The notes under the pieces were generated by a model that saw only the letters and a program-made list of their open reading frames with translations, ran no database searches and was not told the DNA's origin. A DNA stretch of 64,000 bases, taken from positions 124,001 to 188,000 of IMG/VR virus record IMGVR_UViG_3300017917_002434, one strand, 5' to 3'. The position numbers and the translations under genes are program-made. Position 1 is the stretch's first letter, and each line of letters begins with the position of its first letter. Of the stretch, positions 13,601-63,342 are shown piece by piece.

Positions 13601-16600
13601 TGGTTTATATCTAGAGCGTATAGATTATTTCGAGTTTTTACAATAAAATCTACATCTCCAGAATAAACATAACCAGCAGAAGATTCAGCTACAGAATAAG
13701 ACTTAGTAGGATAAGAATAATCAGGACCACCGATAGTAAAATCATTTGCTCCTGTTAAAATATAGTTCTGATAATTTGTTTTCGATAACCCACGACTATC
13801 TATAATAACAGGTTGTGGGTTTAATCTTATATCTTTCTGGTTTAAAGATATTTCCAATTCTTTAAATTGTGCTGATCCTCCGAACGATGACATCAAGAAT
13901 GCCCATTCTTCTTTCATTTCTACAGCGTCTTGATCTAGAGAACTTAGCTTATCAAATATTTTTGTGATAGAATTTTTTGTACCTTTCTCTTTTATAAAAC
14001 CTTGATAGATTCTAAACTGAGTAACTTCATCCTGTGCTAGGTCTTCTAAATATTCACGTTTCTGATATCCTATACTGTGTCTAGCTAATTCTTTTTCGGT
14101 ATCGTCAATACCTTGATATCCAAGTTCATAATAATCCTCGATTTGATTTATTTTGTAATCAAGATTAGCTAACAAGGAAGGCGTTGGAAATGAATCTAAT
14201 CTTTCCCAACTATTAAAATTAAAATCTTTAGATCCGGTTTGTGTGATTTTAGAAACATAATAATATTCTCTAAACTGTACAATATCGCCTAACTTATAAT
14301 CCTTAAAAGATTCCCAAAAATCAATATCTGCGGTATCAAAAATAAAACCCGGACTTGTATAATCGCCGTCCCAGTCGGTAGTTCTAAATCCTATTAACTT
14401 TATTCTATCTTGTCTATATCCAGGAGCTTTATCAAATATTACATCACCGAACATAGTTTTATCATTAAACACAGTCACGTGTTCTTTTTGTACAAAATTA
14501 ATTTTAGCGAAATAAATTCCGATTGCCTGTGCGTCTAAAGGCGATAATATAAATTCATTATAGCCGCGATAAATTTGTATGTCGCTCGCAGGTATCTTAG
14601 TACCGTCATTACTAAAAATATTATAATCGTAAAAACTATCTAACACATTATCTGCTACACTGCCTACGTTCGCGATCTTTAACAATGTGGCACCTGGACT
14701 TAATGTTATTAATGCTCCTACTGCCCAATTATGCGAAGTCCAGAACATGAATTCTCTAGCAGATAATACCCAGTCGTTAGGCTCTGATAATTCTTTATTA
14801 AATTCTTCAAATACTAATCCCTGATCTTTCAGCCATTCACTATAGCCTAATATTACATCTACAACTTGTTGGACTGTTGAAAAAATACTGTTATACGGAA
14901 CACGTTTCACTACAAGTTTATTAAATGTAGTTCTATTGATAGCAGTTACGTCATTGACGATCGGTAACGCAGGCAATGCTGTGAAGTTTTCATTTTGAAA
15001 AATATTAGCAGACACATGATTAGCTGTACAGCGATAAAATTGTCCTTGATATCTTACCAAAGAACCTTTTCCGTAATATTGTTCAGCGTCCCAATCTACA
15101 TATTTTTCACTAACTCCGCCTACTGATATAACAGGATCATCAACTCGTGTATATGGTTCATATGTATTAAAAAATGAATTTAATTTGTCATAGCCAAATA
15201 ATTTAAATCCCCCGTCTACCTTTTCAACTATCATACCAGAATAACTGATAGATTTAACTACAGAACTGGTGTTGAAAATAATTTGATAATCTTCCGGAGG
15301 AATAAACACCGCTGGAGATTTAGATGTAGGATTTTTACTGTCTAAAATATACTTCTGTCGTTGTTTTTCAACAAATCCGCCGACTCTGTGAGATATTTTT
15401 ACATTCATATTATCTATAATATTAGACAATACTGAAGTATTAACAGCGTTAAATTTAAGATAGTTTTGTATGTAAGTTAATAAACCAGAAGGCTGAGTCG
15501 TTGAACTCGAAAGGATAGTTTCTTTATCGATGAACTTTCCTGTATTTTTATCTATAGGTTGACCTAAAATATTCTTGTCGATTACATTTCGATCAAAATT
15601 CATCGATATAAATTCGAAAGGTGTCAATAACGAGGCTGCGGTAACTATAGAGAACGGATATAAGGAACTTCTACGCCACGAATTTTCTACAGGACCGTAA
15701 TCGCCAAATTGAAAATCTTCATTTATTCTGTTTAAAGAATAGTCTATAATAGCCGAAGCATCTTGAGGTGAAACTAGACCTCCGTGCTCATCTACGGGAA
15801 TATAATCTAAAAGACCTGGTCTTATAAATCTAGGATTTACTCCGCTGTTAGGGCCTTGACGAATTATACCTTGCTCTAAATCTTCCCACAATAATAGATT
15901 CCCTTTAGTGTAAGGAGCAGGACCATATTCGTCTTCCCACCATAAAGGTTTCTCACTAAACCCTAACATTTCCCAAGGATTTGTATGAGGTCTATCAGTA
16001 TCATATAAAAATTTATAGATACCCCTCCAGAATTGAGGAAGTTTTACTGTTTTGTTTCTATCTGTTGCTCTATAATAGGTATATGAAAAAGGATTTTCGG
16101 CCTGATATATTTCATTTTTATAAATGTCTATACCTAGATTATTTGCCCATTTTAAAAAATCAGTTTCTATTACAGTATCTACTACATCTACTCCATAAGT
16201 TGCCTGTCCATGATAACCTTTAAACAGTTTATCTACATCAAAAAAAGCAGGATCATATTTGATCTTAATGTTATTGTAAATTCTTTTTTCTAATTCTAAA
16301 ATTGCGTCGTCCCTGAGATCTCCAAAAGCTATTGTAATGCTTCCGTCGTGTCCCTGGATTACATCTACCGGATTTAATAACGTAGTATCTAAATACAGCC
16401 TCGGAGTAAATTTTTTATACAGGCCTAACTTAGTTGGTGTTTCAGGAATAAAGTTATATGCTGTACTTAAATATTCTCTAATTTCAATCTTATCATTTTC
16501 ATTTAGGTCTATTAATAATTTTACGAAACCAAAAGTAGAGTCGAAAATATAATCGAAACCGTGGAGTAACTGATTGTCGTTTACATACACATAAACCGCA

Positions 16601-32659: not shown

Positions 32660-33094
32660 GTGCTGTGGACATATCAAAATCAAATCATAGAAGAAATACC
32701 AGAAGGCTATATTGGCTTTGTTTATCTCATCACCAATCTTAAAACCGGACAGAAGTACATAGGCAAGAAACTAGCACAATTCAAACGTACTAAACCACCA
32801 CTCAAAGGCAAGAAACTTAAAAGAAGATCTGTAGTAGAAAGCGATTGGCGTGACTACTGGGGATCATCTGATAGGCTCAACGCAGACGTCCAAGCATTAG
32901 GTCCGGAAAACTTCACCAGAGAAATACTTTATCTTTGTAAATCCAAGGCAGAAATGTCATATCTAGAGGCTAGAGAGCAGTTTGAACGCAGAGTTTTAGA
33001 AACAGATGACTATTATAATGGTATTATAAACGTCAGAGTAGGCGGATCAAACATACTTAGACAGCGTCTAGAAGAACATAAAAAGGCAAAATAA
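32660..33094 (+). CDS. Minimal GIY-YIG nuclease-like protein
   Basis: GFVYLITNLKTGQKYIGKK fits GIY-x(10-11)-YIG, with conserved downstream YWGSS, REIL and YLEAREQF. GTG start immediately after the upstream TGA. Confidence 0.75.
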   Translation: MLWTYQNQIIEEIPEGYIGFVYLITNLKTGQKYIGKKLAQFKRTKPPLKGKKLKRRSVVESDWRDYWGSSDRLNADVQALGPENFTREILYLCKSKAEMSYLEAREQFERRVLETDDYYNGIINVRVGGSNILRQRLEEHKKAK

Positions 33095-33538
33095 TCGCCA
33101 AAAAAGCCCGCACCGGCGACTGTTATGGTGCCCAAAATCCGCGGTGATGTCACGCGGTAAGGATCCTAAATTGGCGAAGGATAATTACAGTACTATCCTT
33201 AACAGGACGATGATCGGATATGCCTTTAACCGGTTTACTGTACGAAAAATACATTTTTATAGGCTAAATGAGGGTTAATAACCCACGGTTAAAATAAGCG
33301 ATAGCAGGTTTATTTTAATCCGCCGTCAGGATAAGACGGAGCTCGAGGTACCGGCTGACCGCCTCTGTAATGCTCTACTGCTGTGTGACATGTTCGACTC
33401 GGATAATGTTCAAACTTTTGCCCGACCTGGGCAAAGTGTGACTGAACGATCTGGATAATAGTTAAAACTGCTTCGCAGTTAACTTTAAAAAAATGTGTCT
33501 GAGCGGTAGCGATAGACACGAGTGAGCTTTGCTCACTC
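33095..33538 (+). ncRNA. Candidate large structured non-coding element (RNA or ssDNA), family not recognised
   Basis: 444 nt with no convincing ORF and at least 10 stems, including long-range closing helices, G-U-containing stems and a possible pseudoknot. Starts at the base after the GIY-YIG stop. Confidence 0.6.
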
Positions 33539-33545: not shown

Positions 33546-33553
33546 TATAAATA
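33546..33553 (+). promoter_or_regulatory. T4 consensus late promoter TATAAATA
   Basis: Exact consensus 30 nt upstream of the ATG at 33583. A second TAAATA lies at 33540-33545. Confidence 0.75.
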
Positions 33554-35838: not shown

Positions 35839-35846
35839 TATAAATA
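35839..35846 (+). promoter_or_regulatory. T4 consensus late promoter TATAAATA (tape-measure operon)
   Basis: Exact consensus, 58 nt upstream of the ATG at 35905. Confidence 0.7.
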
Positions 35847-41027: not shown

Positions 41028-42746
41028 TTGAGTTGGAAAAAATATTTTACGCCTGTACCTGTAGGTAAACAATCGGGAGTGATGAGTCCGTTAGGAAACG
41101 GAAGTCGCCCAGGTCCGGCACGCTCAAATTATTCTAGTTTTTTACCAGATGTCTATGCCGGTACACCAAATCGTGTAGAACGTTATATGCAATATGAAAC
41201 TATGGATATGGACAGCGAAGTCAATGCTGCTCTAGATATCCTCGCAGAGTTCTGCACTCAAACCAACAGAGAAAATAACACCGCATTCCAGATATTGTTC
41301 AAAGGACAACCTACAGCTACAGAAGTAAAGATCCTCAAAGACGGACTACAAAAATGGGCTAAGTTCCAACAATTTGAAACAAGGATGTTCCGTATAGTTC
41401 GAAATGTTTTCAAATACGGCGATGCTTTTTTTATTAAAGATCCTGAAACACTGAAATGGTTCTATGTCGATCCAGCCAAACTAGTAAAAATTATCGTTAA
41501 TGAATCAGAAGGTAAGAAGCCAGAACAATATGTGCTTCGAGACATGAATTTTAATTTTAAACATCTGGTAGCAACTTCGATATTAGCTAATACCAATAAG
41601 ACACCCGCAGGCACAGCCAGCTATGTCAGCGGTGGCTCATTTGGTCGAGGTATGGTAGGAACAGCACCTACGCAAACTGGAACTAGATTTAGTGTAAATC
41701 AAGATGAACTCGCAGTAGATGCTAAACACATCGTACACCTAAGCCTGTCAGAAGGACTGGATAACAACTATCCTTTTGGTAATTCACTGTTAGAATCAGT
41801 TTTCAAAGTCTACAAGCAGAAAGAACTGCTTGAAGATGCTATCATTATCTATCGTGTACAACGTGCTCCTGAACGCAGAGTGTTTTACATCGACGTAGGT
41901 AATATGCCTGCTCACATGGCCATGAGTTTTGTTGAACGAGTTAAAAACGAAATCAATCAACGACGCATTCCTAGCCAGACAGGCGGCGGTCAGAATATGA
42001 TCGATGCTAGCTATAATCCCTTGAGTATCTCAGAAGACTATTTCTTCCCACAGACAGCAGAAGGCCGCGGCTCTAAAGTTGACACACTACCAGGCGGTAC
42101 TAATCTAGGTGAGATCGACGATCTACGCTATTTTACTAATAAGCTATTCCGTGCCCTACGCATACCTAGCAGCTACTTACCAACCATGCCCGACGACAGT
42201 CAAGCAGCATTTACGGATGGAAAAGTAGGAACTGCTTACATACAAGAACTGCGTTTTAACGAATATTGTAAACGACTACAGACTAATCTAGTTGAAGAAT
42301 TTGATCTGGAATTTAAAACTTGGCTGATCGATACAGGTATTAATATTGATAATTCATTATTTGAATTAAAATTTAATCCTCCTCAAAACTTCGCAGCCTA
42401 TCGTCAGAGCGAACTAGATAACTCTCGTGTACAGACATTTGCCGCACTACAAGAAGTACCTTTTATGAGCAAACGTTTTGCTTTAAAACGATTCTTAGGT
42501 CTAAGCCAAGAAGAAATCACAGAAAACGAACGTCTGTGGAAAGAAGAGAATGGTACTCTAGTATCGGCAGCTATGAATGCTGCTACAGAGATGAGATCCG
42601 TGGGTGTAACTCCTGGTGGGATATCAGCAGATATGGACGCACAGAGCCAAGAAGCACCCGACGATCTAGCAGCACAAACTGAAAATCCTGCTCCAGAAGG
42701 CGGAGATACAGCGGCAGCAGCACCGACAACTCCGACAGCAATCTAA
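41028..42746 (+). CDS. gp20: Portal protein
   Basis: LLEDAIIIYRVQRAPERRVFYIDVGNMP and EDYFFPQTAEGRGSKVDTLPGG are T4 gp20 motifs. TTG start after a GGAG RBS. Confidence 0.95.
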   Translation: MSWKKYFTPVPVGKQSGVMSPLGNGSRPGPARSNYSSFLPDVYAGTPNRVERYMQYETMDMDSEVNAALDILAEFCTQTNRENNTAFQILFKGQPTATEVKILKDGLQKWAKFQQFETRMFRIVRNVFKYGDAFFIKDPETLKWFYVDPAKLVKIIVNESEGKKPEQYVLRDMNFNFKHLVATSILANTNKTPAGTASYVSGGSFGRGMVGTAPTQTGTRFSVNQDELAVDAKHIVHLSLSEGLDNNYPFGNSLLESVFKVYKQKELLEDAIIIYRVQRAPERRVFYIDVGNMPAHMAMSFVERVKNEINQRRIPSQTGGGQNMIDASYNPLSISEDYFFPQTAEGRGSKVDTLPGGTNLGEIDDLRYFTNKLFRALRIPSSYLPTMPDDSQAAFTDGKVGTAYIQELRFNEYCKRLQTNLVEEFDLEFKTWLIDTGINIDNSLFELKFNPPQNFAAYRQSELDNSRVQTFAALQEVPFMSKRFALKRFLGLSQEEITENERLWKEENGTLVSAAMNAATEMRSVGVTPGGISADMDAQSQEAPDDLAAQTENPAPEGGDTAAAAPTTPTAI

Positions 42747-46334: not shown

Positions 46335-47519
46335 ATGTCAGAACTACTCGAGTCACGCTGGCAGGAAACCAAAGAGGCACTTCTAGAAGGCCTACAAGGA
46401 ACTCGTCGTTCAGTAATGGCCACTACTCTTGAAAATACCCGCAAGTATTTGTCGGAGAGTGCCACTGCTGGTGCTACTTCTGCCGGTAACGTTGCAACCC
46501 TAAATCGTGTGATCCTACCTGTGATCAGACGTGTTATGCCAACAGTCATTGCTAATGAACTAGTTGGTGTACAACCAATGACAGGCCCAGTTGGTCAAAT
46601 CCATACTCTACGTGTTCGTTACAGCGACGCAGTAGGTACAGATGTTACAGCTGGTGATGAGGCTCTAAGCCCATTCAAGATTGCTACTGCTTATTCTAGC
46701 AATCCTTCTGGTACATCACTAGACGGAGTAGCTGCTTCAACAGCAGCGATGGAAGGCGTAGCTGGTCGTAAGATGAGCATCCAAATCCTCAAGCAAACAG
46801 TTGAAGCTAAGACACGTAAATTGTCTGCTCGCTGGACATTTGAGGCTGCTCAAGATGCACAAGCCCAACAAGGCATTGACATCGAAGCAGAAATCATGGC
46901 TGCTTTAGCACAAGAAATCACAGCTGAAATCGACCAAGAGGTTCTAAGCTCACTACGTACCCTAGCTGGTACAGCAGTTGAGACTTATAATCAAGCTGCT
47001 GTATCAGGTACAGCTACATTCGTTGGTGACGAGCATGCCGCATTGGCAGTTCAAATCAACCGTGTTGCTAACTTGATCGCTCAGCGTACACGTCGTGGTG
47101 CTGGTAACTACGCAGTTGTTAGCCCATTCGCACTTACAATTCTTCAATCTGCTACAACTTCTGCGTTCGCAAGAACAACAGAAGGTACTTTTGAAGCTCC
47201 AACAAACACCAAGTTCGTTGGTACATTGAACAGTGCTATGAAAGTGTATGTTGATGCCTACGCAACTGACAGCACAGACGTGCTTATCGGTTACAAAGGT
47301 TCTAGCGAATCTGACGCACCAGCATTCTACTGCCCATACATTCCATTGATGAGCAGCGGTGTTGTGTTAGATCCAGCAACTTTCGAACCAGTCGTAAGCT
47401 TCATGACACGTTATGGTTATGTTGAGTTGACAAATACAGCTTCTTCTCTAGGTAACGCAGCTGACTACCTAGGTAAAGTTGATATTTCTACCAACTACGC
47501 TAACGTTAAGTTTAGCTAA
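46335..47519 (+). CDS. gp23: Major capsid protein
   Basis: VILPVIRRVMPTVIANELVGVQPMTGPVGQIHTLRVRY, VEAKTRKLSARWTFEAAQD, FYCPYIPL and FMTRYG are gp23 motifs. Confidence 0.96.
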   Translation: MSELLESRWQETKEALLEGLQGTRRSVMATTLENTRKYLSESATAGATSAGNVATLNRVILPVIRRVMPTVIANELVGVQPMTGPVGQIHTLRVRYSDAVGTDVTAGDEALSPFKIATAYSSNPSGTSLDGVAASTAAMEGVAGRKMSIQILKQTVEAKTRKLSARWTFEAAQDAQAQQGIDIEAEIMAALAQEITAEIDQEVLSSLRTLAGTAVETYNQAAVSGTATFVGDEHAALAVQINRVANLIAQRTRRGAGNYAVVSPFALTILQSATTSAFARTTEGTFEAPTNTKFVGTLNSAMKVYVDAYATDSTDVLIGYKGSSESDAPAFYCPYIPLMSSGVVLDPATFEPVVSFMTRYGYVELTNTASSLGNAADYLGKVDISTNYANVKFS

Positions 47520-47588: not shown

Positions 47589-47858
47589 ATGCGTGTTGAA
47601 TCAGAAAATGACTTTCCAGAACTCAGGCGACAGATATCTGTATGGCGTCGAAAGTTTTCAATGTTCACCCACGACGTAAATCATATAGAGCATACTATAG
47701 AAAATCATATACAAAATTTTTCAGTTGCTGGTGTACACTACAGACAAACGAAAAGTAAAAAATATCTAGAAATCGCACAGAAAGAACTAGACGAAATCAA
47801 CAGAATAGTAGCCATAGCTGAAAAGATGGAACTGATGTCCTTACTCAGCCGCGGATAA
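47589..47858 (+). CDS. Hypothetical protein (89 aa; start corrected to ATG 47589)
   Basis: TAAATA at 47578-47583 precedes this ATG. The ORF-track TTG at 47568 falls in the terminator U tract. Confidence 0.55.
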   Translation: MRVESENDFPELRRQISVWRRKFSMFTHDVNHIEHTIENHIQNFSVAGVHYRQTKSKKYLEIAQKELDEINRIVAIAEKMELMSLLSRG

Positions 47859-47861
47859 ATA
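47856..47861 (+). promoter_or_regulatory. Late promoter TAAATA
   Basis: GATAAATAAAG overlaps the upstream stop and opens an 82-nt leader. Confidence 0.6.
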
Positions 47862-47866: not shown

Positions 47867-47920
47867 TCTAGAGCGTACTCACAGAGTAACTTATGCGGTA
47901 ACCCACCGCGTAGACCTAGA
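47867..47920 (+). promoter_or_regulatory. Structured 5' leader (three-way junction candidate)
   Basis: P1 TCTAG/CTAGA encloses TACTC-aca-GAGTA and TATGCGGT-aaccc-ACCGCGTA. Confidence 0.5.
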
Positions 47921-47943
47921 ACGTCAAATTAAGGAGAAAACAA

Positions 47944-48351
47944 ATGGGACGTCCATTAAGAAAAGATGTACTTGGTACTGACGCTATCGGTACTCCAGCG
48001 ACAAGCAGCACAGGTGTTAGAGTTGAAGCCTACGCAGGAGGAACAGCATACACTGATGCTACTTACAATGCTTCAACAAATTACGCATACATTTACAAAC
48101 AACGCGGTGCTAAAACTTTTGTTCTAAAAAATCAAGCTGGAACAATTCTAGGACCATGCGTACTTCAATCTGCCATTCCAGACGGAAACGGAGAAATGAG
48201 ATTGAACGGTTATGTTGGCGGAAACGCTTCTGCTCCAACACCCATTGCTAAAATCACAAAGCGTGTAGCTACTGATTTTAATAACAATCGTTATACTTGG
48301 GTTCTAGTCAACGACTCTACCAGCGATTACATTCAACTAACCGCTATCTAA
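47944..48351 (+). CDS. Virion structural protein (135 aa; possible capsid decoration)
   Basis: Late promoter, strong AAGGAG RBS, MGRPL start and beta-rich composition, just downstream of the capsid gene. Confidence 0.55.
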   Translation: MGRPLRKDVLGTDAIGTPATSSTGVRVEAYAGGTAYTDATYNASTNYAYIYKQRGAKTFVLKNQAGTILGPCVLQSAIPDGNGEMRLNGYVGGNASAPTPIAKITKRVATDFNNNRYTWVLVNDSTSDYIQLTAI

Positions 48352-51130: not shown

Positions 51131-51147
51131 TCACAACATCGCTCCGA

Positions 51148-51153
51148 TAAATA
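51148..51153 (+). promoter_or_regulatory. Late promoter TAAATA
   Basis: GATAAATATC, 18 nt upstream of the TTG at 51172. Confidence 0.6.
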
Positions 51154-51171
51154 TCAAATAAGGGGCGTATT

Positions 51172-54100
51172 TTGGCAGATCTAGGTAGAATTTCCGGTCC
51201 AATGCTTAAGGCCAACCTTGAAAGGTTGGGCGTTGATCTCGTCTTCGAAAATCAGTTCGGAGATAATAATCTTTATCTTGATGTAAATTCTAGAAAGATT
51301 GGTATCAACACCAATGCCATGCCTCGAGAGTTAACTGTAGACGGCACATTAGGTACAATCGGTCTCATCGTCGACAACGACGCACAACTAACTAATCTAT
51401 ATCTTGATGGCGACACTGGAACTATAACTAGCTACACAGGCGATGTTACTATTCAGGCCACTGGCACCCTGTTTGCTGATATCTTAGAAACTCCTAGTTT
51501 AATTTTTAATGATAATTATATCCAAGGTGTTATTAGTAATGAAAACATAGAACTAGTACCGCACGGTACAGGTAAAGTATTGCTAGATGGCAATGCTGTT
51601 ATCTCCGGTAACGTACAAGGCGATTCAAATTTGATTATCAAAGGTGATATAACTTTTGGTAACGATATAAACACCGATACCGTAAACATCACAACAGAAA
51701 TAGCAGGAAATTTAGATCCTAAAATCAATGAAGTTTACAATATAGGTAGACCAGATAAAAAATGGGACGAGCTACACAGTGAACTAGTTAACGGTGAATT
51801 TTTAATCACTGAAGATCTAACAGCAGTAGCTAATGTTAATTCTAATGCTGCGAAACGTCCAGGTAATTCTTATTTTGTCAGTACTTTAGGTGTTGACAGC
51901 GGTATCTGGAATGACGGTACACACCAGCTTGGCGGATTTAGAACTATCAAACATGCGTTAAGTTTTGCCACTGCCGGCGATACTGTGACAATATATCCCG
52001 GAGTCTACCAAGAAACATTTCCTTTAGAAGTACCGGAAGGAGTCACAGTCAACGGTACAAATATTCGAACAGTCATTATTGAACCAGATTCAAGCAGCGA
52101 ATTTAAAGATTGTTTCCTATTAAATGCTGGATCTACCGTCTCTAATCTCACAGTAAGAGATTTCTTTTATAATAGTTCAACTGATGAAGGTTATGGATTT
52201 AGATTCGCTCCGAACTACGATGCTACTGAACGTTCACCATACGTACAAAATATAACAGTTATTACTAAAGAAATTCCTAACACATTATTGCCTGGAGCGA
52301 TATATGTTGATCCGGAAGGTCTTGGTCTTTCATTTGACACATACGGAGTAACCGTAAGTAAGTCTGGTCACAGCGAAGCATTAGTACAAAGCTGGGTTGG
52401 AAAAACGATGGCAACTTATTTCGGTCCATCATTTCCTGTTACATTTTATACTATTACAGGATACGAACCATCAGTCCAAGATCCGACTCAGTTGTGGAAT
52501 CTTATTCTAGCTGAACCGTTTAATCCTTTACAGCAGGGATTTTCTTTCTCAATATATCCAAGCGGGACAACATTTATACTTCCTCCTAATGATTATGATA
52601 TGACAGGAGCTTCGATTGGAGAACCTTGGGTAGCTTATTTCAAAACTAATTTACCACTAGATTTTAATACCGTGGTCGGTCAAGGTTGGTCTATTAATAA
52701 CAATGGAGTTGTTTATGTTATAGATTATGTGATCCAAGATCCTATTAACACTAACATGTGGAGAATATATGTAACAACTTCGTTAGTTCCAGCATCAGGG
52801 ATTCCTATATTTTCATCTCCGTCTGGGTCTGCCGGAGCACCGGCAGGACGAGGTGCTCTAGTCGACGGCAGTAATGCCGTACCTCAGTCTATCACGGCTA
52901 GTATGCTGTTCCATTCTGTGACATTTATAGTTCCTAATTCTGTCGGGTTATACATGACCAACGGTGTTAGGGTAGAGTGGCTGAATTCATTTACGTATTT
53001 TGCTTCTAAAGGTCTGTATGCTACTAACGGTAGTACCGGAAGATTGAGCCCGGACGGGTCTACTATGCTGTATGGAGCTGAACTTCGAAGTATAGGATCG
53101 GCTAACGTCTACGGTTTAGTCGGTGCTGAAGGTGACGGCAGCAGTGTATTGATGTATCTTATCAATCATAACTTTGCCTATATCGGAACAGGTACTAGTT
53201 CAATAAATGATGACACGGCTGTAGTTCAAGCTGACGAAACAGTGACAATTAACGGTGCTAGAATTTATTGGCAAAGCGACGATCATAAAGGAAATTTTCG
53301 AGTAGGCGAAGCATTTTTCGTAAATCAAGAAACAGGATTTGTAACATTTAACGGTATAGGTCAAAGTGTCAGCGGTATAAATGAAATAATTTTTTCAGCA
53401 GGCGACGATATCACGATTCTAAATGCTGAACGTATCGAAACTGGTGATGTTGTATTCCAAGGAAATCTTCTATCGACCGCTACAGGCGATCTAAATATCA
53501 AATCCGCCCTAGCACCGCAGACTTTACAGACAAGTAATATCGCAGGTAACCTAGATGTTACCGGCAATATTAGTATAGATGGAACTATCAATATCGGTAA
53601 TGCCGGTGCTATAGATACTGTAACATTCGCCAGCGAAGTCGACAGTGATATTATTCCTAAATTTCCTAACAGTTCGTCTTTAGGTATTACAGCGTTAGCA
53701 TGGAATTCTATCTGGTTAGGGCAAGCAGACTTCAACGATATTGTTATAAACGATAATAAGATTTACACAACAACGTCAAACAGCAATTTAGAATTATATG
53801 CTGCCGGAACAGGAAAAGTAGTATTCAATGCGTTACAAGTAGAAACAGGTTTTGATGCTGTTAATATTGTAAATCTAGATGACATAAACATCATAGGAAC
53901 ATTTTCGCAGACAGGAAATCAAACTCGTACTGGCAACACAACAATAACAGGCGATTATCAATTATCTAATACTCTAACATTGTCAGTGCCTAGTTTAAGT
54001 TTTGGAGATATTTCTGTAGATAGCAATGTAATATCAACAGTACAATCAAACGCTGATCTACAATTATTAGCCAGCGGTACTGGTAATATCTATGTTCCAA

Positions 54101-56871
54101 TAAATGATGTACAAGTCGATAACGACCTAATATACAATGTTGTTAATTCGAACAATATTCAAACAATTCTAGCGACATCGGACATATTTGATGCTGGCGT
54201 AAAAATATCAGGAAATGTGATAGAAACTCCTACCCCAGATTTGATAATAAATGCGGCGGGCACCGGAAAAGTAAAAACTGATTCAGTATTGATAGATCAA
54301 GATCTCACAGTTATAGGAACGACAACTCTTAAGTCAACTACTGTAGATTCGATAGTGTCGACAGCTCAAATAACATTAACTGGAAATTCACAGATTATAG
54401 GAGATGTGTCTGTAACAAATAATCTGTCTGTAAATTATTCAGTGTTTAAAGACGTTTCGATACAGGGCAACGTAATAACAACTACGATCGGTAATAATGA
54501 TTTATTATTAAGAGCTGCCGGTAGCGGTAATGTAGTATTCCAAGAAAATGTTTTAGTAGATAATAATACTATTGTACAAAATAATACTTCAGCGAACGCT
54601 GCTACAATAGCTACCGAAGTATCATCTTCGCAGATGATTCTAGACGGTGTAACAATCACCGGCAACGTGATAGAATCAAATGATCTAAACAACGATTTAG
54701 TTTTAGATCCTAACGGCATTTTACAAATTACTGGAACAGATGTCGCATTTAATACTGCCTTAACAGTTGCTGGTTCAACAACGTTATCCGATTTGTCTAT
54801 CACAGGACTTGTTACACACACCAACAATTTAATAAGAACCGGTGATGTTGAAATTACAGGATCAACTTCGATACAGCAATCATTAGCAGTTTCTGGATAC
54901 GCACAATTTCAAAATTTAAGAATAGACGGAAATAGAATTTCGTCTAGTGCTAATATCGAATTATCGGCACAGCCGAGTAGGATTGTTATTTTTAATGATA
55001 ATTTAGTAATAGATAATAATCTTGATATCGGAGCAGATTTATTTTCCGACGATTTGACTGTGAGAACCCAAGCCACAGGATTATCGATTTTTGCCGACGA
55101 TATTTTAGTACAAGAAAATTTTATAACTACCACAGCATCTAATGCTGATTTAGAACTTCGGGCTAATGGTACCGGCAGTGTCAATATAACCGATAATTTT
55201 AAAATAATAAATGCTGCCACTATATCAGGCACAACTACTTTATCAAACACAGACATAACCGATCTAGTATTAATCGGTCAGCTTAATCAAACCGGCAACA
55301 TTAATCAGCTCGGTAATGTATCAATAATCGGTGACATTTCGTCTGACGTTTTTACTAACGGTGATATTCTTATAACTGGAAATACTATCGCAACAACAAG
55401 CTCAGATTCAGATATTGAATTATTAGCATCGGGCGGTATAGGAAATATCGTAGTACCAAATTCTAACGTAGTTATAGAGAACGATCTTACAGTAAATGAT
55501 GCTTACATAGCAGTACAAAATATAACATTTCCTAATGATGTCACTAGCGATGTTTACGAAAGTGATCAGGTAAGAATACAAAATAATTACATAGAAACAT
55601 ACACATCAAACACCGATTTAGAACTAGCTGCTCACGGGACTGGTCGAGTTACTGTACAACCTACTCTAGAAATTCCTACAGGACAATTTAATCTAACAGG
55701 AAATTCAACTTTCCCAGCGACCGATATTGTAGGAACGTTTGGATTAACTGGAACAAAACAACACACCGGAACATTTAATCTTTCAGGAGAATATAATCTA
55801 ACAGGTAATCTTATTACTAACGGACAAGCATTATTTGAAGATTATAATTTTATCGATTTTAGGATAGCAACTACTACTTCTAACAGTAATGTAGATCTAA
55901 GAGCAGCAGGTTCAGGAAAAGTAATATTTAACGACTCGGTTTTATTGAGTCAAGATCTTACAGTATTTGGTGATATATTATCGAGGAATATTACAGGTAC
56001 AACCATAGTTACAGATACGATTTCAGACGGCGACATTCGCATCAAAGATAATTTTATAGAGACTACGTTATCAAATAGTAATTTACATCTGTTAGGTTCT
56101 GGAACAGGCAGCGTGATTTTAGAAAAAACTAGAATTACAAACAATATTATCTCTACTGTAGATACTAATTCTAATTTAAACGTAACACCATTAGTAGGGC
56201 AGCTTGTAGATTTTGATAAAACCAATGCTATTAAATTACCTGCTGGAACTAGCCTTAATAAATTAACCGGAGTCACAGGCGAACTAAGATTTAATACTTC
56301 TGTGTCTAGATTTGAAGGGTGGACAAATAATGGATCTATAACATATGGGGGTATATTTTCTAGAAATCGTGCTACTTCTGTGAGAGCACTGGATACTGAT
56401 GTTTTAGACTTTAGAATTAATAATGTTTCTAGGATGAGTATCAACAGCACCACAGTTAACCTTACAGCATTATTAACAGGATCATTAATATTCAGCGGAA
56501 ATACTATTTCTAGCACCAGCAATAGTAATATTAATTTAGACCCTAATGGAACAGGTGAAGTTGTAATGGGTGATATACTGTTTACAGGTACCACTCTTAC
56601 AAATACAGATCCTACAGAAAACATGGTTTTACAAAATACTGGATCCGGTTATGTAAAATTTAATACAACTACAGCATTAGTAATTCCTACCGGCGACACA
56701 TCTAGCAGACCACTAACTCCTGAAGTCGGAGATATTCGTTTTAACACTGATCTCAGTGCCCCTGAAGTGTTTAATGGTATAGCATATTCAACTTTAGCGG
56801 GTAATTCAACAAACGCCACGCTAGCAGAAATCCAAGAGCTAAACGAGATCTACGCCATCCTACTTGGTTAA
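51172..56871 (+). CDS. Long fibre-like virion protein A (1899 aa) with beta-helix-like domain and repeat shaft
   Basis: YFVSTLGVD...FRTIKHALSFATAGDTVTIYPGVYQE (pectin-lyase-like start motif) and about 15 copies of IxTxxSNxxLxLxAxGTGxV. TTG start. Confidence 0.7.
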   Translation: MADLGRISGPMLKANLERLGVDLVFENQFGDNNLYLDVNSRKIGINTNAMPRELTVDGTLGTIGLIVDNDAQLTNLYLDGDTGTITSYTGDVTIQATGTLFADILETPSLIFNDNYIQGVISNENIELVPHGTGKVLLDGNAVISGNVQGDSNLIIKGDITFGNDINTDTVNITTEIAGNLDPKINEVYNIGRPDKKWDELHSELVNGEFLITEDLTAVANVNSNAAKRPGNSYFVSTLGVDSGIWNDGTHQLGGFRTIKHALSFATAGDTVTIYPGVYQETFPLEVPEGVTVNGTNIRTVIIEPDSSSEFKDCFLLNAGSTVSNLTVRDFFYNSSTDEGYGFRFAPNYDATERSPYVQNITVITKEIPNTLLPGAIYVDPEGLGLSFDTYGVTVSKSGHSEALVQSWVGKTMATYFGPSFPVTFYTITGYEPSVQDPTQLWNLILAEPFNPLQQGFSFSIYPSGTTFILPPNDYDMTGASIGEPWVAYFKTNLPLDFNTVVGQGWSINNNGVVYVIDYVIQDPINTNMWRIYVTTSLVPASGIPIFSSPSGSAGAPAGRGALVDGSNAVPQSITASMLFHSVTFIVPNSVGLYMTNGVRVEWLNSFTYFASKGLYATNGSTGRLSPDGSTMLYGAELRSIGSANVYGLVGAEGDGSSVLMYLINHNFAYIGTGTSSINDDTAVVQADETVTINGARIYWQSDDHKGNFRVGEAFFVNQETGFVTFNGIGQSVSGINEIIFSAGDDITILNAERIETGDVVFQGNLLSTATGDLNIKSALAPQTLQTSNIAGNLDVTGNISIDGTINIGNAGAIDTVTFASEVDSDIIPKFPNSSSLGITALAWNSIWLGQADFNDIVINDNKIYTTTSNSNLELYAAGTGKVVFNALQVETGFDAVNIVNLDDINIIGTFSQTGNQTRTGNTTITGDYQLSNTLTLSVPSLSFGDISVDSNVISTVQSNADLQLLASGTGNIYVPINDVQVDNDLIYNVVNSNNIQTILATSDIFDAGVKISGNVIETPTPDLIINAAGTGKVKTDSVLIDQDLTVIGTTTLKSTTVDSIVSTAQITLTGNSQIIGDVSVTNNLSVNYSVFKDVSIQGNVITTTIGNNDLLLRAAGSGNVVFQENVLVDNNTIVQNNTSANAATIATEVSSSQMILDGVTITGNVIESNDLNNDLVLDPNGILQITGTDVAFNTALTVAGSTTLSDLSITGLVTHTNNLIRTGDVEITGSTSIQQSLAVSGYAQFQNLRIDGNRISSSANIELSAQPSRIVIFNDNLVIDNNLDIGADLFSDDLTVRTQATGLSIFADDILVQENFITTTASNADLELRANGTGSVNITDNFKIINAATISGTTTLSNTDITDLVLIGQLNQTGNINQLGNVSIIGDISSDVFTNGDILITGNTIATTSSDSDIELLASGGIGNIVVPNSNVVIENDLTVNDAYIAVQNITFPNDVTSDVYESDQVRIQNNYIETYTSNTDLELAAHGTGRVTVQPTLEIPTGQFNLTGNSTFPATDIVGTFGLTGTKQHTGTFNLSGEYNLTGNLITNGQALFEDYNFIDFRIATTTSNSNVDLRAAGSGKVIFNDSVLLSQDLTVFGDILSRNITGTTIVTDTISDGDIRIKDNFIETTLSNSNLHLLGSGTGSVILEKTRITNNIISTVDTNSNLNVTPLVGQLVDFDKTNAIKLPAGTSLNKLTGVTGELRFNTSVSRFEGWTNNGSITYGGIFSRNRATSVRALDTDVLDFRINNVSRMSINSTTVNLTALLTGSLIFSGNTISSTSNSNINLDPNGTGEVVMGDILFTGTTLTNTDPTENMVLQNTGSGYVKFNTTTALVIPTGDTSSRPLTPEVGDIRFNTDLSAPEVFNGIAYSTLAGNSTNATLAEIQELNEIYAILLG

Positions 56872-56884
56872 ACTACCCAAACGA

Positions 56885-56890
56885 TAAATA
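56885..56890 (+). promoter_or_regulatory. Late promoter TAAATA
   Basis: GATAAATAC opens a 116-nt leader. Confidence 0.6.
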
Positions 56891-57006
56891 CTATTGATTA
56901 CAAGGACGACCAATCCTTGTATGGTTAAACTGTGGTAAACCAGCAAAGAGCCCGCAAGGGATGAGAATTCGGTTAACCGTGAAACACGGGGTGAAAAGGA
57001 GAGCGA
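56891..57006 (+). promoter_or_regulatory. Structured 5' leader, candidate cis-regulatory RNA
   Basis: Hairpins TACAAGGA/TCCTTGTA, TGGTT/AACCA, CCC-GCAA-GGG and CCGTG-AAA-CACGG lie just before the AGGAG RBS. Confidence 0.55.
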
Positions 57007-60000
57007 ATGAGCCAGCTTGGTCGTATTAGCGGTCCGCTCTTAAAGGCAAACCTTCTACGCCAAGGTGTAGATCTAGCCTTTGAGACCGACCTACTTTATC
57101 TTGATGTTGTTAACAGGCGAATCGGCATAAAGACTGCTACTCCTAGTCACGAACTCCAAGTAAACGGTACGACCCGCACAACAAATCTAGAAGTCACGGG
57201 ATCTACAGCACAGATAGGCGACTTCTTATTTTCACCGAATACAATAACATATGACGGCGATTTAACTTTTAATCTGCCAGAAGGTTCTGCCCTAAGAACC
57301 AGCAAGTTCTCCATAGATTCAATCGATATTTTTAACAATATCATAGCAACCAACGAATCAAATGCTAATTTAGAAATTCGTCCTAGCGGTACTGGAATCG
57401 TTGACATCAAATCCGGAGTACAAGTAGCAGGAGATTTACAAGTTGACGGTGCAATCACTGCCGACGGTAACATAATTTTAGGTGATGCTACTACTGATAC
57501 CCTTACCTTCAATGCTGAAATAAACAGCGACTTAATTCCTGACGCAAATGAAACATATAGATTAGGATCAAATCCTTCCACCGGAGGAAAACGCTGGTAT
57601 GATACATGGACACGCAATCTATATGCTGATATTATTACTTCACAGAATCTAATCATAGATGGAGTAAACATTTCAGCATTGCCTGGAAACATGCTATACG
57701 TATCTGCGGTAAATGGAGATGATACAAGACAAGGCGAACACCCTAACGATACATTAAAAACACTGAAACAAGCTCTAAATCTTGCTACAGCAGGAACTAC
57801 GATATATCTATATCCAGGAGTTTACGTAGAGGAGTTTCCTTTAGAAGTTCCCGTAGGTGTTACAGTTAAAGGTACAGGAATACGTTCAGTACGCATAGTA
57901 CCTACAACACAAACCGAATATAACGATGCTTTTTTACTCAACGGTGAAACTACTGTCGAAGATTTAACAGTTGCTGATTTTTATAGTGGCGGCAATTATT
58001 TTACAGTTACGTCTGCTTCGGCAGGTACCACAACAGTTAATGTAGGCACATCGCCTTTCGCTCATACCTATGTTAGCGGCGGAACTATTGAATTTATCGA
58101 CAGTAGTAGCGGAAATGTTACCGGTGCTACTTACACTCACACTACTGGTACTTTAGTATTAACACATACCGGTGGTACTGCTAGCCCAGGCGACAGAGTA
58201 TTTCTATCAAATCTAACATTCAGCTGTAACGGCGGAAATAGAGTATTTCCGGATAACGGTTACGCATTTAGGTTTGCTACAGATTTTGAAGTTACGACTA
58301 GATCACCGTACGTTAGAAACGTCACTGTACTAACCAAAGGTACTATTGTAGGTCCGGGCGATCCATTAGGATTTGGTTCAGGCGATGCTGGTAAAGGTGC
58401 GTATGTAGATGGTGCGTATGCTACTGCGATTTCTAAAGAAGCCAGTATGCTGTTCCACTCCGTGACATTTATTACACCGGGCGTAGATGGCTTGTCAGCT
58501 ACGAACGGTGCTAGGGTAGAGTGGTTAAATTCATTTACTTATTATGCTAACAAAGGTATGAATTTGTTCAGCAGCAACGACGGTTTTAATAGCGACGGCA
58601 AAACAAGAATAAAGATTTCTAATAGAACAGGAACATTTAATGTAGGTAACACACTGAGCTATTACGACACTGACGGAACTACTGTTTTAGCTTCCGGAAC
58701 AATTCAAAGTATAGACGGTGATTTTTTCAACATAGACGGCAAGAATGCCGGATGGGTTACCTTAGAAGATAGAATAGGAAAAACAGTTACAGTTAGCGGT
58801 GATGCTAAACTGTCAACTGCTCAGAAAAAATTTGGTTCAGCAAGTCTTGTATTAGACGGCACCGGCGATTTTATTAATATAGCGAGTCAGCCTGATTTTG
58901 GATACGGAACAGGCGATTTTACTATAGAATTTTTCTGGAGACCCACAGCATTAGGTACTCAACAAGTTTTATTAGATTGTAGAACTGCTGCAACTGATAC
59001 AGCACTTTATTTAGAAATGAATGCTGCTGGTAATATTAGACTATTTGTCAGTGGAGCATATCGTATTACTTCCAGTGTGGCATGTACCGCGGGAACATTT
59101 AATCACATAGCTCTTTTTAGAGTCGGCGGAGTTACAAAATTAGCAGTTAACGGAACGATTACACCAACTACTTACACAGATGCTAACAATTATCCAGCAA
59201 GACCTTTTAGATTAGGAGCTACTTGGACAGGAACAACAGCCTCTAACGGTTATTTTGATGAAGTTAGAGTAGTAAAAGGCATAGCGAAATATACATCGTC
59301 AGTTACAGTGCCTACCGCGGCATTCACGAGCGACTCGTCTACTGTACTGTTACTGCACTTTAATGGTACAAATAATTCAACTATAATAGTAGATGACGGC
59401 GTAACAACACAAGACATTAGAACTTCGGCCGGCGGAACCGCCACAGTAATTGATCTAGCAGATTACTCAGATTTTGGTGCCGAACTAAGAAGTATTGGCT
59501 CTGCTTGTGTGTATGGAAACTATGGTGCTTACGGCGATGGCGATGGCGTCATAGCATATCTCATCGGACAAAATTTAGCTTATATAGGTAACGGCGGAGA
59601 TTCGAATAATGATCCGACTACAGTTATTCAGGCTAACGAAATTGTAGAATTAAATCGTGCTAAGATTTTCTATACTTCGGTTGATCACAAAGGTGATTTC
59701 CGTGTAGGTGATCAATTTTATATTAATCAAGACACTGGTGAAGTTGTCTTTAGTAATTCTAACGTAGCAGTTACAGGTAGTTTACTATTCAACGATGGCG
59801 TAAATCAGACCTACATTGATGCTACAAAGATCGAAACAGGCGATTTCCGTATATCAAACAACACCGTAGAAACACTTAGCCAAGTAATGAATATAAATTC
59901 ATTCACCGGCGAAGTAAATTTCTTAAACAATGTTAATATCGCCGGCGATCTCGATGTTACAGGAAATGTAACGATCGGCGGTAACATTACGATAGGCGAT

Positions 60001-63000
60001 CAAACTACAGATTCTGTTAATATTGAAGCGAGAATTAACAGCGATATCATTCCTAAATTAAACGATACTTATGATCTAGGAACTACAGTCGAACGCTGGA
60101 GACAGATATTTGTTAATAAATTAACTGCTGACAATATAGAAATCGTAGACAATAAGATTTCTACGTTAGATTCAAACAGCGACCTCGAGTTATCAGCAGC
60201 CGGAACAGGTAAAGTTCTTATTCCTAACAATGACCTACAAGTAAACAGTACTTTCACAGTCATAGGAACTACTAATCTACAAAATACTAATGTCGTAGGT
60301 AATTTAAACCTTACAGGTAACTCTACTATAACAGGCGATGTAGTACAAAACGGAGACCTTAGCGTTACCGGATCGTTCTTTTCAGCTTCCTTAGATCTTG
60401 AAAATATCGAGATAGTTGAAAACAATATTAGAACCAAAAACAGTAATCAAGACCTACAACTAGAAGCAGCGGGTACTGGTAGGATTTATATTCCATCCAA
60501 CGACGTTCAGATGGATCAAGACCTTACAGTTTTAGGCACGATTACTGGTCCTGTGATCAATAACACTGGAACAATTACATCTAGTACATTTACTAACAAT
60601 AACATTGTCATAAGCACCAATACTATTGCTGCGACAACATCGAATTCGGATCTAGAACTTAGATCAAATGGTACAGGAAAAGTATATGTTTCCAACAGTG
60701 ACGTACAGATCGACGAAGATCTAGAAGTCATCGGCGATACTAACTTAGCAGTTACAAATATCACAGGTACACTGACAGTTAATGGAAACATAGTACAGAC
60801 TGGCAATTATACACAAACTGGCGATCTAACCATAACAGGAAATCTTTCAGTTGGCGACGCAGCTCAATTTGAAAATATTCTTGTTGACGATAATTTTATC
60901 ACAACTACTGTATCAAACAGCGACTTAGAATTAAGAGCGGCAGGCACAGGTAGTGTAATTATTGACGGAACTGATTTAGAAGTACTAGGAAATCTTAACG
61001 TAGTTAATACATTAACTGCTAATTCTCTAAACATAGCTACAGACATTACTGCTGACAGATATACTAACGGTAATATTCTCATCGAAAATAATGTAATATC
61101 AACGACATTATCAAACAGCGATTTAGAACTTAGAGCTAACGGTGTAGGAATTGTACAGGTTACTAGTGATGCTAATATAGATCAAAGTCTAACTGTGTCT
61201 GGAATAACTACGCTGTTAGGATCTACAAATGATGTTACTGGGGTAATAAATCATGTAGGCGATCTTAATCAAACAGGTACAACTACTCATACCGGAGATT
61301 ACTCTTTAACCGGTAATCTCACAGTTGATACTTACGCTCAGTTCGAGAATATACGCATTGACGGCAACCAACTGTACACTACAGAATCAAATAGCAATCT
61401 TGAACTAGCAGCCAGCGGCGTAGGAATAATTTCTATACCTAATAACGACGTAGTAGCAGGACAGAATCTCACTGTCAACGGAACACTGACCGTCGAAAAC
61501 ATTTCTTTAACTATTCTTGAAACAGAAATAGTACAGACTAGCGACATTCGCATACAAAATAATTTTATTACCACTACTCTGTCAAACAGCAATCTCGAAT
61601 TACGTGCCAACGGCACAGGAGAAGTCGTAGTTCCTAACGCAGATGTTGTAGTACAGAACGATTTTACAGTACAGGGCAACACAAATTTACAGAATACAGG
61701 TATAACCGGAACACTAACACAAGTTGGCAATACAACACATACCGGAAATACTACACAAACCGGAGATTACACATTAAACGGTAATTTAGATGTCAGCGGC
61801 CTAGCAGAGATTGCGGATATACAGATTAACGGTAATCAAATTTCATCCATTAACGGATTGAATCTAGTCCTAGATGCTCCCGGATCTGGTATAGTCTACA
61901 TACCAGAAAATGATGTATTAATAGAAAACGACTTATTTGTTAACGGTACACTGTACGCTAACAACGTCATAGGTACTTTTGGATCATTACAATCTAATGA
62001 GATAGATACCGGCGATATTGTAGTACGCGGTAATAGAATTACTACAACACTTTCAAACAGCGACCTTGAATTACGTGCTAACGGCACGGGGTCTGTAATA
62101 ATTGACAACACAGATTTAATCGTAAACGGTGACCTAATAGTTACTACAGATGTACAATTAAACAACACACAGATTACCGGAACACTGACTCACAATGGTA
62201 CTGCTAATCATACAGGAACTGTAAATCAAACTGGAGCATATAATTTAACCGGAAATATGAATATCACCGGTACTGCTCAATACAGCAATATTCGTGTAGA
62301 AGGCAACGTTATTAGAACTACAGTACCAGGCAGCGATCTAACTTTCCAGGCCACGGGTGCCGGCATAATCACTGCTCCTTTCAATGACGTTGAGATAACA
62401 CAGAATTTAACTGTATCGGGGGATGTAACTACTACTGATATAGTAGCTTCAAACTCAGTTACAGCACCGATTATCAACTTAGGTTCTATAACTATCAGCG
62501 GTAACCTTATTACCACAAACACATCTAATACCAATTTAGAACTTAGAGCTAACGGCACCGGCGGAATAGAATTAGAGTCTATCATAGTCAATCAAAATCA
62601 GATTACTACTCAAAATAACACAGATATTGTTATCGCTCCAAACGGCACAGGTATCGTTGATTTCCAGGGTACACAGGCCGTAAGATTGCCGAGAGGGACA
62701 GTGGCAGAACGTCCAGTTGGTCAAGCTGGTCAATTGAGATATAACACTACCAGCAATTATTACGAAGGTTTCGACGGAACAAATTGGCGTAGATTAGACG
62801 GTGTTTATGACCTAGATGAAAATACCTACATAACTCCAGAGACTACTCCCGGAGCCAATGATAACGTTATTAGTTTTTACATTAATGGTCTGAATCGTGC
62901 TACCTTAAACGCTACAGGATTTTCTACAAGTAACGTAGATATAGGCAATATAAATATCACGGGTAATACGATTTCTACTACCAATACTGACGGGAACTTA

Positions 63001-63342
63001 ATATTGGCTCCGAACGGTACTGGTAGTACTGTTATTGGCGTTTTTGCCTTACGTAATAATACTATTACAAACACACAGAATGACGCTGTAACTTCTTTTA
63101 ACCAAACAGGTACCGGATACTTTAAAATTTCCGGAACCAACGGCTTCGTCCTTCCAAGAGGATCAGACGCAGAAAGAGGAGTGATTTTTGAAACAGGTAT
63201 GATGAGATACAATACCACAGATCAGCGTGTAGAAGTGTATGATGGCATAACTTGGGTTTCGGCAGCAGGTAGCACAGGAACTGGTATTACTTATAGCGAA
63301 GCAGAAGGATTAGCTATTACAACAGCATTAATTTTTGGATGA
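57007..63342 (+). CDS. Long fibre-like virion protein B (2111 aa), paralog of A, with LamG/ConA-like insertion
   Basis: N-terminus MSQLGRISGPLLKANL matches MADLGRISGPMLKANL of A, with the same beta-helix and repeat shaft. AKLSTAQKKFGSASLVLDGTGDF...GTGDFTIEFFW...FNHIALFR...GYFDEVRVVKG is LamG-like. Confidence 0.75.
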   Translation: MSQLGRISGPLLKANLLRQGVDLAFETDLLYLDVVNRRIGIKTATPSHELQVNGTTRTTNLEVTGSTAQIGDFLFSPNTITYDGDLTFNLPEGSALRTSKFSIDSIDIFNNIIATNESNANLEIRPSGTGIVDIKSGVQVAGDLQVDGAITADGNIILGDATTDTLTFNAEINSDLIPDANETYRLGSNPSTGGKRWYDTWTRNLYADIITSQNLIIDGVNISALPGNMLYVSAVNGDDTRQGEHPNDTLKTLKQALNLATAGTTIYLYPGVYVEEFPLEVPVGVTVKGTGIRSVRIVPTTQTEYNDAFLLNGETTVEDLTVADFYSGGNYFTVTSASAGTTTVNVGTSPFAHTYVSGGTIEFIDSSSGNVTGATYTHTTGTLVLTHTGGTASPGDRVFLSNLTFSCNGGNRVFPDNGYAFRFATDFEVTTRSPYVRNVTVLTKGTIVGPGDPLGFGSGDAGKGAYVDGAYATAISKEASMLFHSVTFITPGVDGLSATNGARVEWLNSFTYYANKGMNLFSSNDGFNSDGKTRIKISNRTGTFNVGNTLSYYDTDGTTVLASGTIQSIDGDFFNIDGKNAGWVTLEDRIGKTVTVSGDAKLSTAQKKFGSASLVLDGTGDFINIASQPDFGYGTGDFTIEFFWRPTALGTQQVLLDCRTAATDTALYLEMNAAGNIRLFVSGAYRITSSVACTAGTFNHIALFRVGGVTKLAVNGTITPTTYTDANNYPARPFRLGATWTGTTASNGYFDEVRVVKGIAKYTSSVTVPTAAFTSDSSTVLLLHFNGTNNSTIIVDDGVTTQDIRTSAGGTATVIDLADYSDFGAELRSIGSACVYGNYGAYGDGDGVIAYLIGQNLAYIGNGGDSNNDPTTVIQANEIVELNRAKIFYTSVDHKGDFRVGDQFYINQDTGEVVFSNSNVAVTGSLLFNDGVNQTYIDATKIETGDFRISNNTVETLSQVMNINSFTGEVNFLNNVNIAGDLDVTGNVTIGGNITIGDQTTDSVNIEARINSDIIPKLNDTYDLGTTVERWRQIFVNKLTADNIEIVDNKISTLDSNSDLELSAAGTGKVLIPNNDLQVNSTFTVIGTTNLQNTNVVGNLNLTGNSTITGDVVQNGDLSVTGSFFSASLDLENIEIVENNIRTKNSNQDLQLEAAGTGRIYIPSNDVQMDQDLTVLGTITGPVINNTGTITSSTFTNNNIVISTNTIAATTSNSDLELRSNGTGKVYVSNSDVQIDEDLEVIGDTNLAVTNITGTLTVNGNIVQTGNYTQTGDLTITGNLSVGDAAQFENILVDDNFITTTVSNSDLELRAAGTGSVIIDGTDLEVLGNLNVVNTLTANSLNIATDITADRYTNGNILIENNVISTTLSNSDLELRANGVGIVQVTSDANIDQSLTVSGITTLLGSTNDVTGVINHVGDLNQTGTTTHTGDYSLTGNLTVDTYAQFENIRIDGNQLYTTESNSNLELAASGVGIISIPNNDVVAGQNLTVNGTLTVENISLTILETEIVQTSDIRIQNNFITTTLSNSNLELRANGTGEVVVPNADVVVQNDFTVQGNTNLQNTGITGTLTQVGNTTHTGNTTQTGDYTLNGNLDVSGLAEIADIQINGNQISSINGLNLVLDAPGSGIVYIPENDVLIENDLFVNGTLYANNVIGTFGSLQSNEIDTGDIVVRGNRITTTLSNSDLELRANGTGSVIIDNTDLIVNGDLIVTTDVQLNNTQITGTLTHNGTANHTGTVNQTGAYNLTGNMNITGTAQYSNIRVEGNVIRTTVPGSDLTFQATGAGIITAPFNDVEITQNLTVSGDVTTTDIVASNSVTAPIINLGSITISGNLITTNTSNTNLELRANGTGGIELESIIVNQNQITTQNNTDIVIAPNGTGIVDFQGTQAVRLPRGTVAERPVGQAGQLRYNTTSNYYEGFDGTNWRRLDGVYDLDENTYITPETTPGANDNVISFYINGLNRATLNATGFSTSNVDIGNINITGNTISTTNTDGNLILAPNGTGSTVIGVFALRNNTITNTQNDAVTSFNQTGTGYFKISGTNGFVLPRGSDAERGVIFETGMMRYNTTDQRVEVYDGITWVSAAGSTGTGITYSEAEGLAITTALIFG

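Follow-up and report, generated by a model that had tools for sequence, protein, structure and literature searches.

The stretch of DNA analysed here (the window, 64,000 nt) covers positions 124,001 to 188,000 of the IMG/VR record IMGVR_UViG_3300017917_002434, a 269,730-bp virus record estimated to be 76% complete. It belongs to an uncultured freshwater jumbo phage with a T4-like major head protein (phrog_138) and portal protein (phrog_213). The head protein is about 70% identical to those of the jumbo phages PA5oct, GAP32, Sinorhizobium phage Phosso and Vibrio phage 2.275.O, and near-identical DNA occurs in pond, freshwater, lagoon, river and aquaculture metagenomes from 12 studies. Two giant ORFs lie head to tail in the window, fibre A and fibre B, both of which begin with x-x-LGRISGP(L/M)LKANL (fibre B with MSQLGRISGPLLK). 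Both hit PHROG families annotated as baseplate wedge subunit, and fibre B additionally matches Pfam Laminin_G_3, so that "fibre" is a reasonable label, although it has not been proven. A further block of giant virion-like genes on the minus strand, a 4890-aa ORF followed by ORFs of 1170, 795, 731 and 594+ aa on the same strand, was not examined.

An earlier note, made from the sequence alone, had drawn attention to a structured leader of 116 nt with alternative pairings ahead of fibre B, in contrast to a leader of only 18 nt ahead of its paralog fibre A, and had proposed riboswitch- or operator-like control of one receptor-binding paralog. All hairpins listed in the note are present in the sequence where it placed them, and the observation is thus confirmed. 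The two leader lengths are correct if counted from the end of the ATAAATA heptamers, whereas the full intergenic spacers are 135 nt and 41 nt. The coordinates of all features are compiled in the table below.

Features of the fibre B leader and of other loci mentioned in the text (window coordinates)
Feature	Position	Strand	Description
Late-promoter-like heptamer	56884-56890	+	ATAAATA, T4-type -10 element
P1 hairpin	56899-56921	+	stem 56899-56906 with 56914-56921; loop CGACCAA at 56907-56913 (5' strand of PK2)
J1/2	56922-56936	+	includes the octamer
TGGTT/AACCA	56922-56926 with 56938-56942	+	helix proposed in the earlier note
Octamer	56929-56936	+	ACUGUGGU; U31-G32-U33 are strand 1 of PK1, GGU is the loop that crosses P2
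P2 helix	56937-56941 with 56971-56975	+	4 Watson-Crick pairs plus an A.A in this phage; includes AACC (56938-56941) with GGTT (56971-56974)
P2 loop	56942-56970	+	here AGCAAAGAG, P3, AUGAGAAUUC
PK1 strand 2	56943-56945	+	GCA at the 5' side of the P2 loop; pairs 56931-56945, 56932-56944, 56933-56943
Optional insert	56946-56970	+	contains P3
P3 hairpin	56951-56960	+	CCC-GCAA-GGG (GNRA)
P4 hairpin	56977-56989	+	CCGUG-AAA-CACGG
Linker	56990-56996	+	7 nt, variable in sequence and length
Shine-Dalgarno (SD)	56997-57001	+	AGGAG
Start codon of fibre B	57007-57009	+	ATG
PK2 3' strand	57017-57023	+	UUGGUCG, codons 4-6 (Leu-Gly-Arg), +11 to +17
Fibre B	57007-63342	+	2111 aa
Fibre A with its promoter and leader	51147-56871	+	ATAAATA at 51147-51153, unstructured 18-nt leader, TTG start at 51172, 1899 aa
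uORF	56921-56938	+	AUGGUUAAACUGUGGUAA, five codons, overlaps the octamer
Major head protein	46335-47519		phrog_138
Portal protein	41028-42746		phrog_213
freshwater-2 RNA (RF02980)	47875-47946		60 bits; ATAAATA at 47855-47861; 135-aa ORF at 47944-48351
Polynucleobacter-1 RNA (RF01718)	33105-33242		64.3 bits, full length; after ORF 32660-33094
Giant ORF	4666-19338	-	4890 aa

As a single sequence, the 149-nt RNA does not fold better than chance (MFE -32.6 kcal/mol against -29.6 +/- 3.3 for shuffled sequences, z = -0.90). A scan of Rfam 15 (4227 models), one of the checks the note had asked for, gave no match at 56700-57200 at the gathering score or even at E <= 10 with permissive filters. A consensus scan of the spacer (56872-57006) revealed no sigma-70-like promoter, no terminator-like site and no attenuator, and no tRNA or tmRNA was found. 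The only Rfam matches in the window lie elsewhere. A freshwater-2 RNA directly follows an ATAAATA heptamer just downstream of the major head gene and runs into AAGGAG...AUG of a late ORF, so that in this phage the "environmental" motif is a late-gene leader. A Polynucleobacter-1 RNA lies in another spacer, with the nearest ATAAATA downstream at 33547, which gives a phage origin for another orphan Rfam motif.

The ATAAATA heptamer occurs 11 times in the window against 32.6 expected, a three-fold depletion, and most copies are located in or at the edge of spacers within about 60 nt upstream of an ORF on the same strand, including both fibre genes and the freshwater-2 leader. Exceptions are the copies at 42746 and 62950, the latter located inside the end of fibre B about 400 nt before the next ORF, and copies at 35840 (+) and 35859 (-) form a divergent pair. 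The heptamer is conserved in every leader of the family described below. Together with the T4-like core genes, we read the heptamer as a T4-type late promoter (TATAAATA-like -10 element with no -35). The transcript would then probably start about 6-8 nt downstream, which places P1 at the 5' end of the mRNA; the start site is inferred from T4 biology and was not measured, and a gp55-type late sigma factor was not sought, as the rest of the record was not annotated.

To find out whether the leader is conserved among homologues, the absence of which the note had named as a reason to discard the idea, we searched with the first 330 residues of fibre B and obtained 80 viral loci. In those with 47-93% protein identity the upstream spacer is conserved and visibly covaries. 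A pattern scan (TAAATA, a gap, then ACYGTGGTNNNCCNGC) gave at least 120 further viral stretches in IMG/VR contigs, and together these yielded 126 distinct leaders, of which 125 run into an ORF starting with M-x-x-GRISGPLLK. As the scan fixed ACYGUGGU and CCNGC, the invariance of these motifs counts only in the 35 leaders found through the protein alone. A covariance model built from 22 leaders (R1) finds exactly one copy in the 269,730-bp record (117.7 bits) and one in each of 100 loci, with no cross-match to the freshwater-2 RNA. The non-coding leader is 57-90% identical to relatives whose flanking coding DNA is only 53-64% identical. Many contigs carry 2-4 paralogs with the GRISGPLLK-type N-terminus, but only one per contig has the structured leader, and it regularly follows a gene that ends ...LLG*, as fibre A does. 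The other paralogs, including fibre A, have the heptamer and a plain leader of about 18 nt.

No cultured phage was found to carry the leader: a DNA search for a cultured model phage gave no match, the protein search yielded only weak N-terminal matches in cyanomyophages, and S-CAM22 and P-SSM7 have spacers of only 30-41 nt. Screening 596 Gb of genome assemblies for a host gave mostly chance occurrences of the pattern. Only 2 of 80 loci are true copies (78 and 92 bits), located in a 335-kb contig and a 29-kb contig binned as a "Neomarinimicrobiota" MAG and a "Dehalococcoidia" MAG, which are probably misbinned jumbo-phage contigs and not host evidence. Literature searches aimed at the motif found no description of it, and the PA5oct paper reports TATAATA/TTGAC promoters and nothing on this leader.

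Covariation in the homologues, a test the note had proposed, strongly supports P1, P2 and P4. On a 100-sequence alignment 92.3% of cells are paired against 70.1 +/- 0.6 in shuffles, 424 cells have changes on both sides against 125, and sliding the partner by 1-3 columns drops pairing to 28-44%. This alignment was fitted to the model and leans towards it, however plain MAFFT alignments give the same answer for P2 (found by RNAalifold, with 11 double changes) and for P1. All 7 modelled stem pairs of P1 show changes on both sides, with up to 6 pair types per position and 88-95% of cells paired, while the loop GACC is nearly invariant. P2 occurs as AAACC/GGUUA, UAGCC/GGCUA, CAACC/GGUUG, UAUCC/GGGUA, UCGCC/GGCGA and AUACC/GGUAA. 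In P4, four of 5 pairs show double changes, with the compensated variants CGGUG/CACCG, GGGA/UCCC, GGCA/UGCC, GCGA/UCGC and UUGGGU/ACCCAA; the bases flanking P4 (56977-56991 in the window) change together in a non-Watson-Crick way (A...G in most leaders, U...U or G...U in others, e.g. UCCGUG..CACGGU), which hints at a conserved non-canonical pair or a tertiary contact. P3 is real but belongs to an optional insert, as just under half of the leaders replace the whole insert by a 13-nt loop NGCAAUGUAANNN and others carry one or two different hairpins here. More than 50 G.U cells mark the plus strand as RNA. AGGAG is conserved in nearly all leaders, and no conserved complement to the SD exists, which also speaks against an RNA thermometer of the ROSE or fourU type, where the SD is paired in a weak hairpin.

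Comparison further revealed two pseudoknots that the note had not seen. In PK1, three nucleotides of the octamer, which is invariant except for U/C at position 3 in the 35 leaders found through the protein, pair with GCA at the start of the P2 loop, and together with P2 form a classical H-type pseudoknot. The U-A pair (91 of 100 sequences) is C-G in the other 9 with no exception, and the G-C and U.G pairs are invariant, although the C-G variants may stem from very few events. In PK2, the P1 loop pairs with codons 4-6 of the ORF, with 7 perfect pairs and a duplex energy of -9.4 kcal/mol in this phage. Across the family the four core pairs are 98.9% paired. Loop GUCCA co-occurs with a synonymous change of Gly GGU to GGA in two dissimilar leaders (A-U becomes U-A), loop GACCUA occurs with GUA/AUA and loop GACCG with GUC; at that wobble site 96 of 110 cells are paired, against 85.1 +/- 1.9 in permutations. 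In genes with the leader Gly1 is GGU in 119 of 123 and Arg is CGN in 122 of 123, whereas in 58 leaderless paralogs from the same contigs GGU is found in 29 of 58 and AGR in 30 of 58, and the wobble positions of the adjacent Arg and Ile codons vary freely. The codons CUA-GGU-AGA of fibre A cannot pair with a GACC loop. However, 13 leaders whose P1 loop lacks GACC still keep GGU-CGN, so that PK2 is dispensable in some lineages and part of the codon bias may be ancestry. The same holds for one leader lacking P1 (L010, 2925-3003 of its locus), in which the promoter is followed at once by the ACUGUGGU core and the ORF still has UUA-GGU-CGU. Distant mini-variants before MAIGRISGSVLK genes (L074, 2908-2997; L075/L076, 2901-2997) comprise only the core and P4. 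They have no P1, ACUGCUGU in place of ACUGUGGU, P2 as CAGUC/GACUG or CGGCC/GGCCG, the same GGCAAUG..AA loop and a different P4, and R1 detects them at 24 bits; L074 and L075 have UGC/GCA at the place of PK1.

Other pairings were considered and rejected. The TGGTT/AACCA helix of the earlier note is not supported, as its 5' arm is not conserved in relatives. The note's suggestion that the ACCA loop of hairpin 1 has alternative partners is right in spirit, but the partner that covariation supports is neither of the upstream TGGT copies but the site inside the ORF. RNAalifold did propose pairing of the P1 loop with UGGU of J1/2 on a crude alignment (-4.4 kcal/mol), yet it shows only one-sided changes, and the GUCCA-loop variants compensate in the ORF, not in J1/2; it is kept only as a possible decoy. 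Pairing of ACUGUGG with P4 or its loop is not consistent between clades, and a k-turn or C/D-box reading of AGAG/AUGA around P3 does not fit the consensus across variants. The uORF AUG GUU AAA CUG UGG UAA is probably incidental, since its AUG is absent in most relatives.

Evidence from RNA libraries is thin. Short contigs from three metatranscriptome studies cover 56960-57170, but as assembled contigs they cannot prove transcription and show neither a 5' end nor abundance; their ends at about 56960-56973 coincide with the strain-variable insert and with breaks in the DNA contigs. In one pond DNA sample the summed contig depth rises 4- to 9-fold, from about 23 to 90-210, over 56892-57137, which fits many co-occurring relatives sharing this island.

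We conclude that the segment is a conserved, structured, strand-specific 5' leader at a fixed position before one paralog of a fibre-like gene family, and that the interpretation given in the note is partly supported: the architecture is riboswitch- or operator-like, with covarying helices, invariant unpaired nucleotides and two pseudoknots, whereas whether a ligand or a protein acts on it, or whether it switches fibre composition, was not tested. In the explanation we favour, with moderate confidence, the late mRNA of fibre B starts just after the heptamer and folds into the 5'-terminal hairpin P1, the pseudoknot core with or without P3, and P4, followed by the SD and AUG in an unpaired linker. 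PK2 closes the whole leader into a ring and places a 5-7-bp helix inside the stretch which the 30S subunit must hold single-stranded (+8 to +17), with the invariant pseudoknot domain 10-20 nt upstream of the SD. A structured element thus adjoins the initiation region, but as the SD is not paired by any conserved element, classic sequestration is absent and repression would rest on PK2 alone. The analysis itself demonstrates the family-wide conservation, helices P1, P2 and P4, both pseudoknots, the strand specificity and the exclusive linkage to this gene; the transcription start, the repressive role of PK2 and the existence and nature of an effector are our inference. In this view the core would be the docking site of a factor that stabilises or releases the closed form, most likely a protein, either unassembled fibre B (or a partner) in autogenous feedback, which is the most economical version, or a phage or host RNA-binding protein; protein binding was not assayed. 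The phage would then set the amount of fibre B independently of the paralogs with plain leaders.

A riboswitch appears unlikely but is not excluded. The core, comprising ACUGUGGU, P2 with its GCAAUGUAA-type loop and P4, has many invariant unpaired nucleotides inside covarying helices, an H-type pseudoknot and an optional variable insert, as is typical of aptamers, and it persists when P1 and PK2 are lost. A ligand could shift the P1 loop between the decoy in J1/2 and the coding-region site, turning translation on or off according to host state. On the other hand, no Rfam riboswitch matches, the only gene linked to the leader is a virion structural gene, which suggests no ligand (binding of small molecules was not measured), and no conserved mutually exclusive pairing involves the SD. 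PK2 together with the decoy could serve as an expression platform, but with no covariation for the decoy pairing the observations do not decide this point. A slightly more probable but still tentative alternative is an effector-less element acting constitutively, as a 5'-terminal stabiliser against 5'-end-dependent decay and as a fixed brake or timer on initiation, which sets the fibre B to paralog ratio without sensing anything or senses only temperature through melting of PK2. The position of P1 about 8 nt after the heptamer, the shortness of PK2, the free SD and the lineages that dispense with P1 and PK2 agree with this, but the invariance of about 20 unpaired nucleotides across leaders whose genes are below 50% identical, and the retention of the pseudoknot core, exceed what a stabiliser hairpin or a simple brake needs.

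Conservation at the DNA level only, as a recombination linker for swapping fibre modules or a transcription factor binding site with incidental hairpins, is very unlikely. Although the leader and the first 150 nt of the ORF form an island of high identity between diverged phages, and the pond contig depth rises there, this reading is largely refuted by the compensatory double changes in P1, P2, P4, PK1 and PK2 and by the G.U cells and the invariant U.G, which would be A.C mismatches on the other strand or in a DNA cruciform. Just as improbable is a self-cleaving ribozyme or processing signal separating the fibre A and fibre B messages. The compact pseudoknotted fold with invariant junction bases in a phage spacer would allow it, but no ribozyme family matches, the fold lies downstream of its own promoter, its pairing to the ORF points to translation rather than cleavage, and the helices are too short for RNase III.

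The closest working analogues are protein-controlled operators. The phage T4 gene 32 translational operator consists of a 5' pseudoknot plus an unstructured region through which gp32 represses its own synthesis. There, as here, an H-type pseudoknot lies some tens of nt upstream of a free ribosome-binding region in an mRNA leader of a phage with T4-like core genes, and control in T4 is exerted by a protein rather than by SD pairing. However, there is no sequence or model similarity, gene 32 encodes a DNA-binding replication protein and not a late virion protein, and the present leader has additional helices (P1, P3, P4), a long-range pseudoknot into the ORF and an unknown binder. In the E. coli rpsO (ribosomal protein S15) operator, which acts by entrapment, a hairpin loop pairs with nucleotides around or just after the start codon, so that the initiation region sits inside a pseudoknot that a protein can lock; it is unrelated in sequence and much smaller, whereas here the enclosed loop is about 100 nt and contains a separate pseudoknot domain. 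The pseudoknot riboswitches preQ1-I/II, SAM-II/V, fluoride and guanidine-III share a compact H-type pseudoknot with invariant loop bases close to an SD, but in those classes the SD or its flank is part of the pseudoknot and the regulated genes point to the ligand, neither of which holds here. The freshwater-2 RNA, a cis-regulatory motif of unknown function, is a second structured late leader in the same genome, with a different architecture of three simple hairpins and a different downstream gene.

Structured cis-acting mRNA leaders as such are known, but structured regulatory RNAs in front of phage virion genes are hardly known, and control of tail-fibre stoichiometry in many-fibred jumbo phages is an open question. 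The present leader represents a well-supported RNA family absent from Rfam 15, unusual in its target, a late virion gene of jumbo phages, and in its rare, clearly covarying pairing between a 5'-UTR loop and synonymous sites of the ORF. If, as seems unlikely on present evidence, the invariant core is the aptamer of an undescribed riboswitch or sensor class of uncultured jumbo phages which reads a host metabolite or second messenger and acts through competition for the P1 loop, virions made in different host states would carry different fibre sets. With its hundreds of natural variants, the leader gives a concrete, mutable handle on how one receptor-binding paralog is dosed and adds an example of RNA structure constraining codon choice, while the freshwater-2 RNA shows that "environmental" Rfam motifs can be late-gene leaders of this kind of phage. 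Most likely the leader is a translational operator or sensor that controls how much of one fibre paralog is made.
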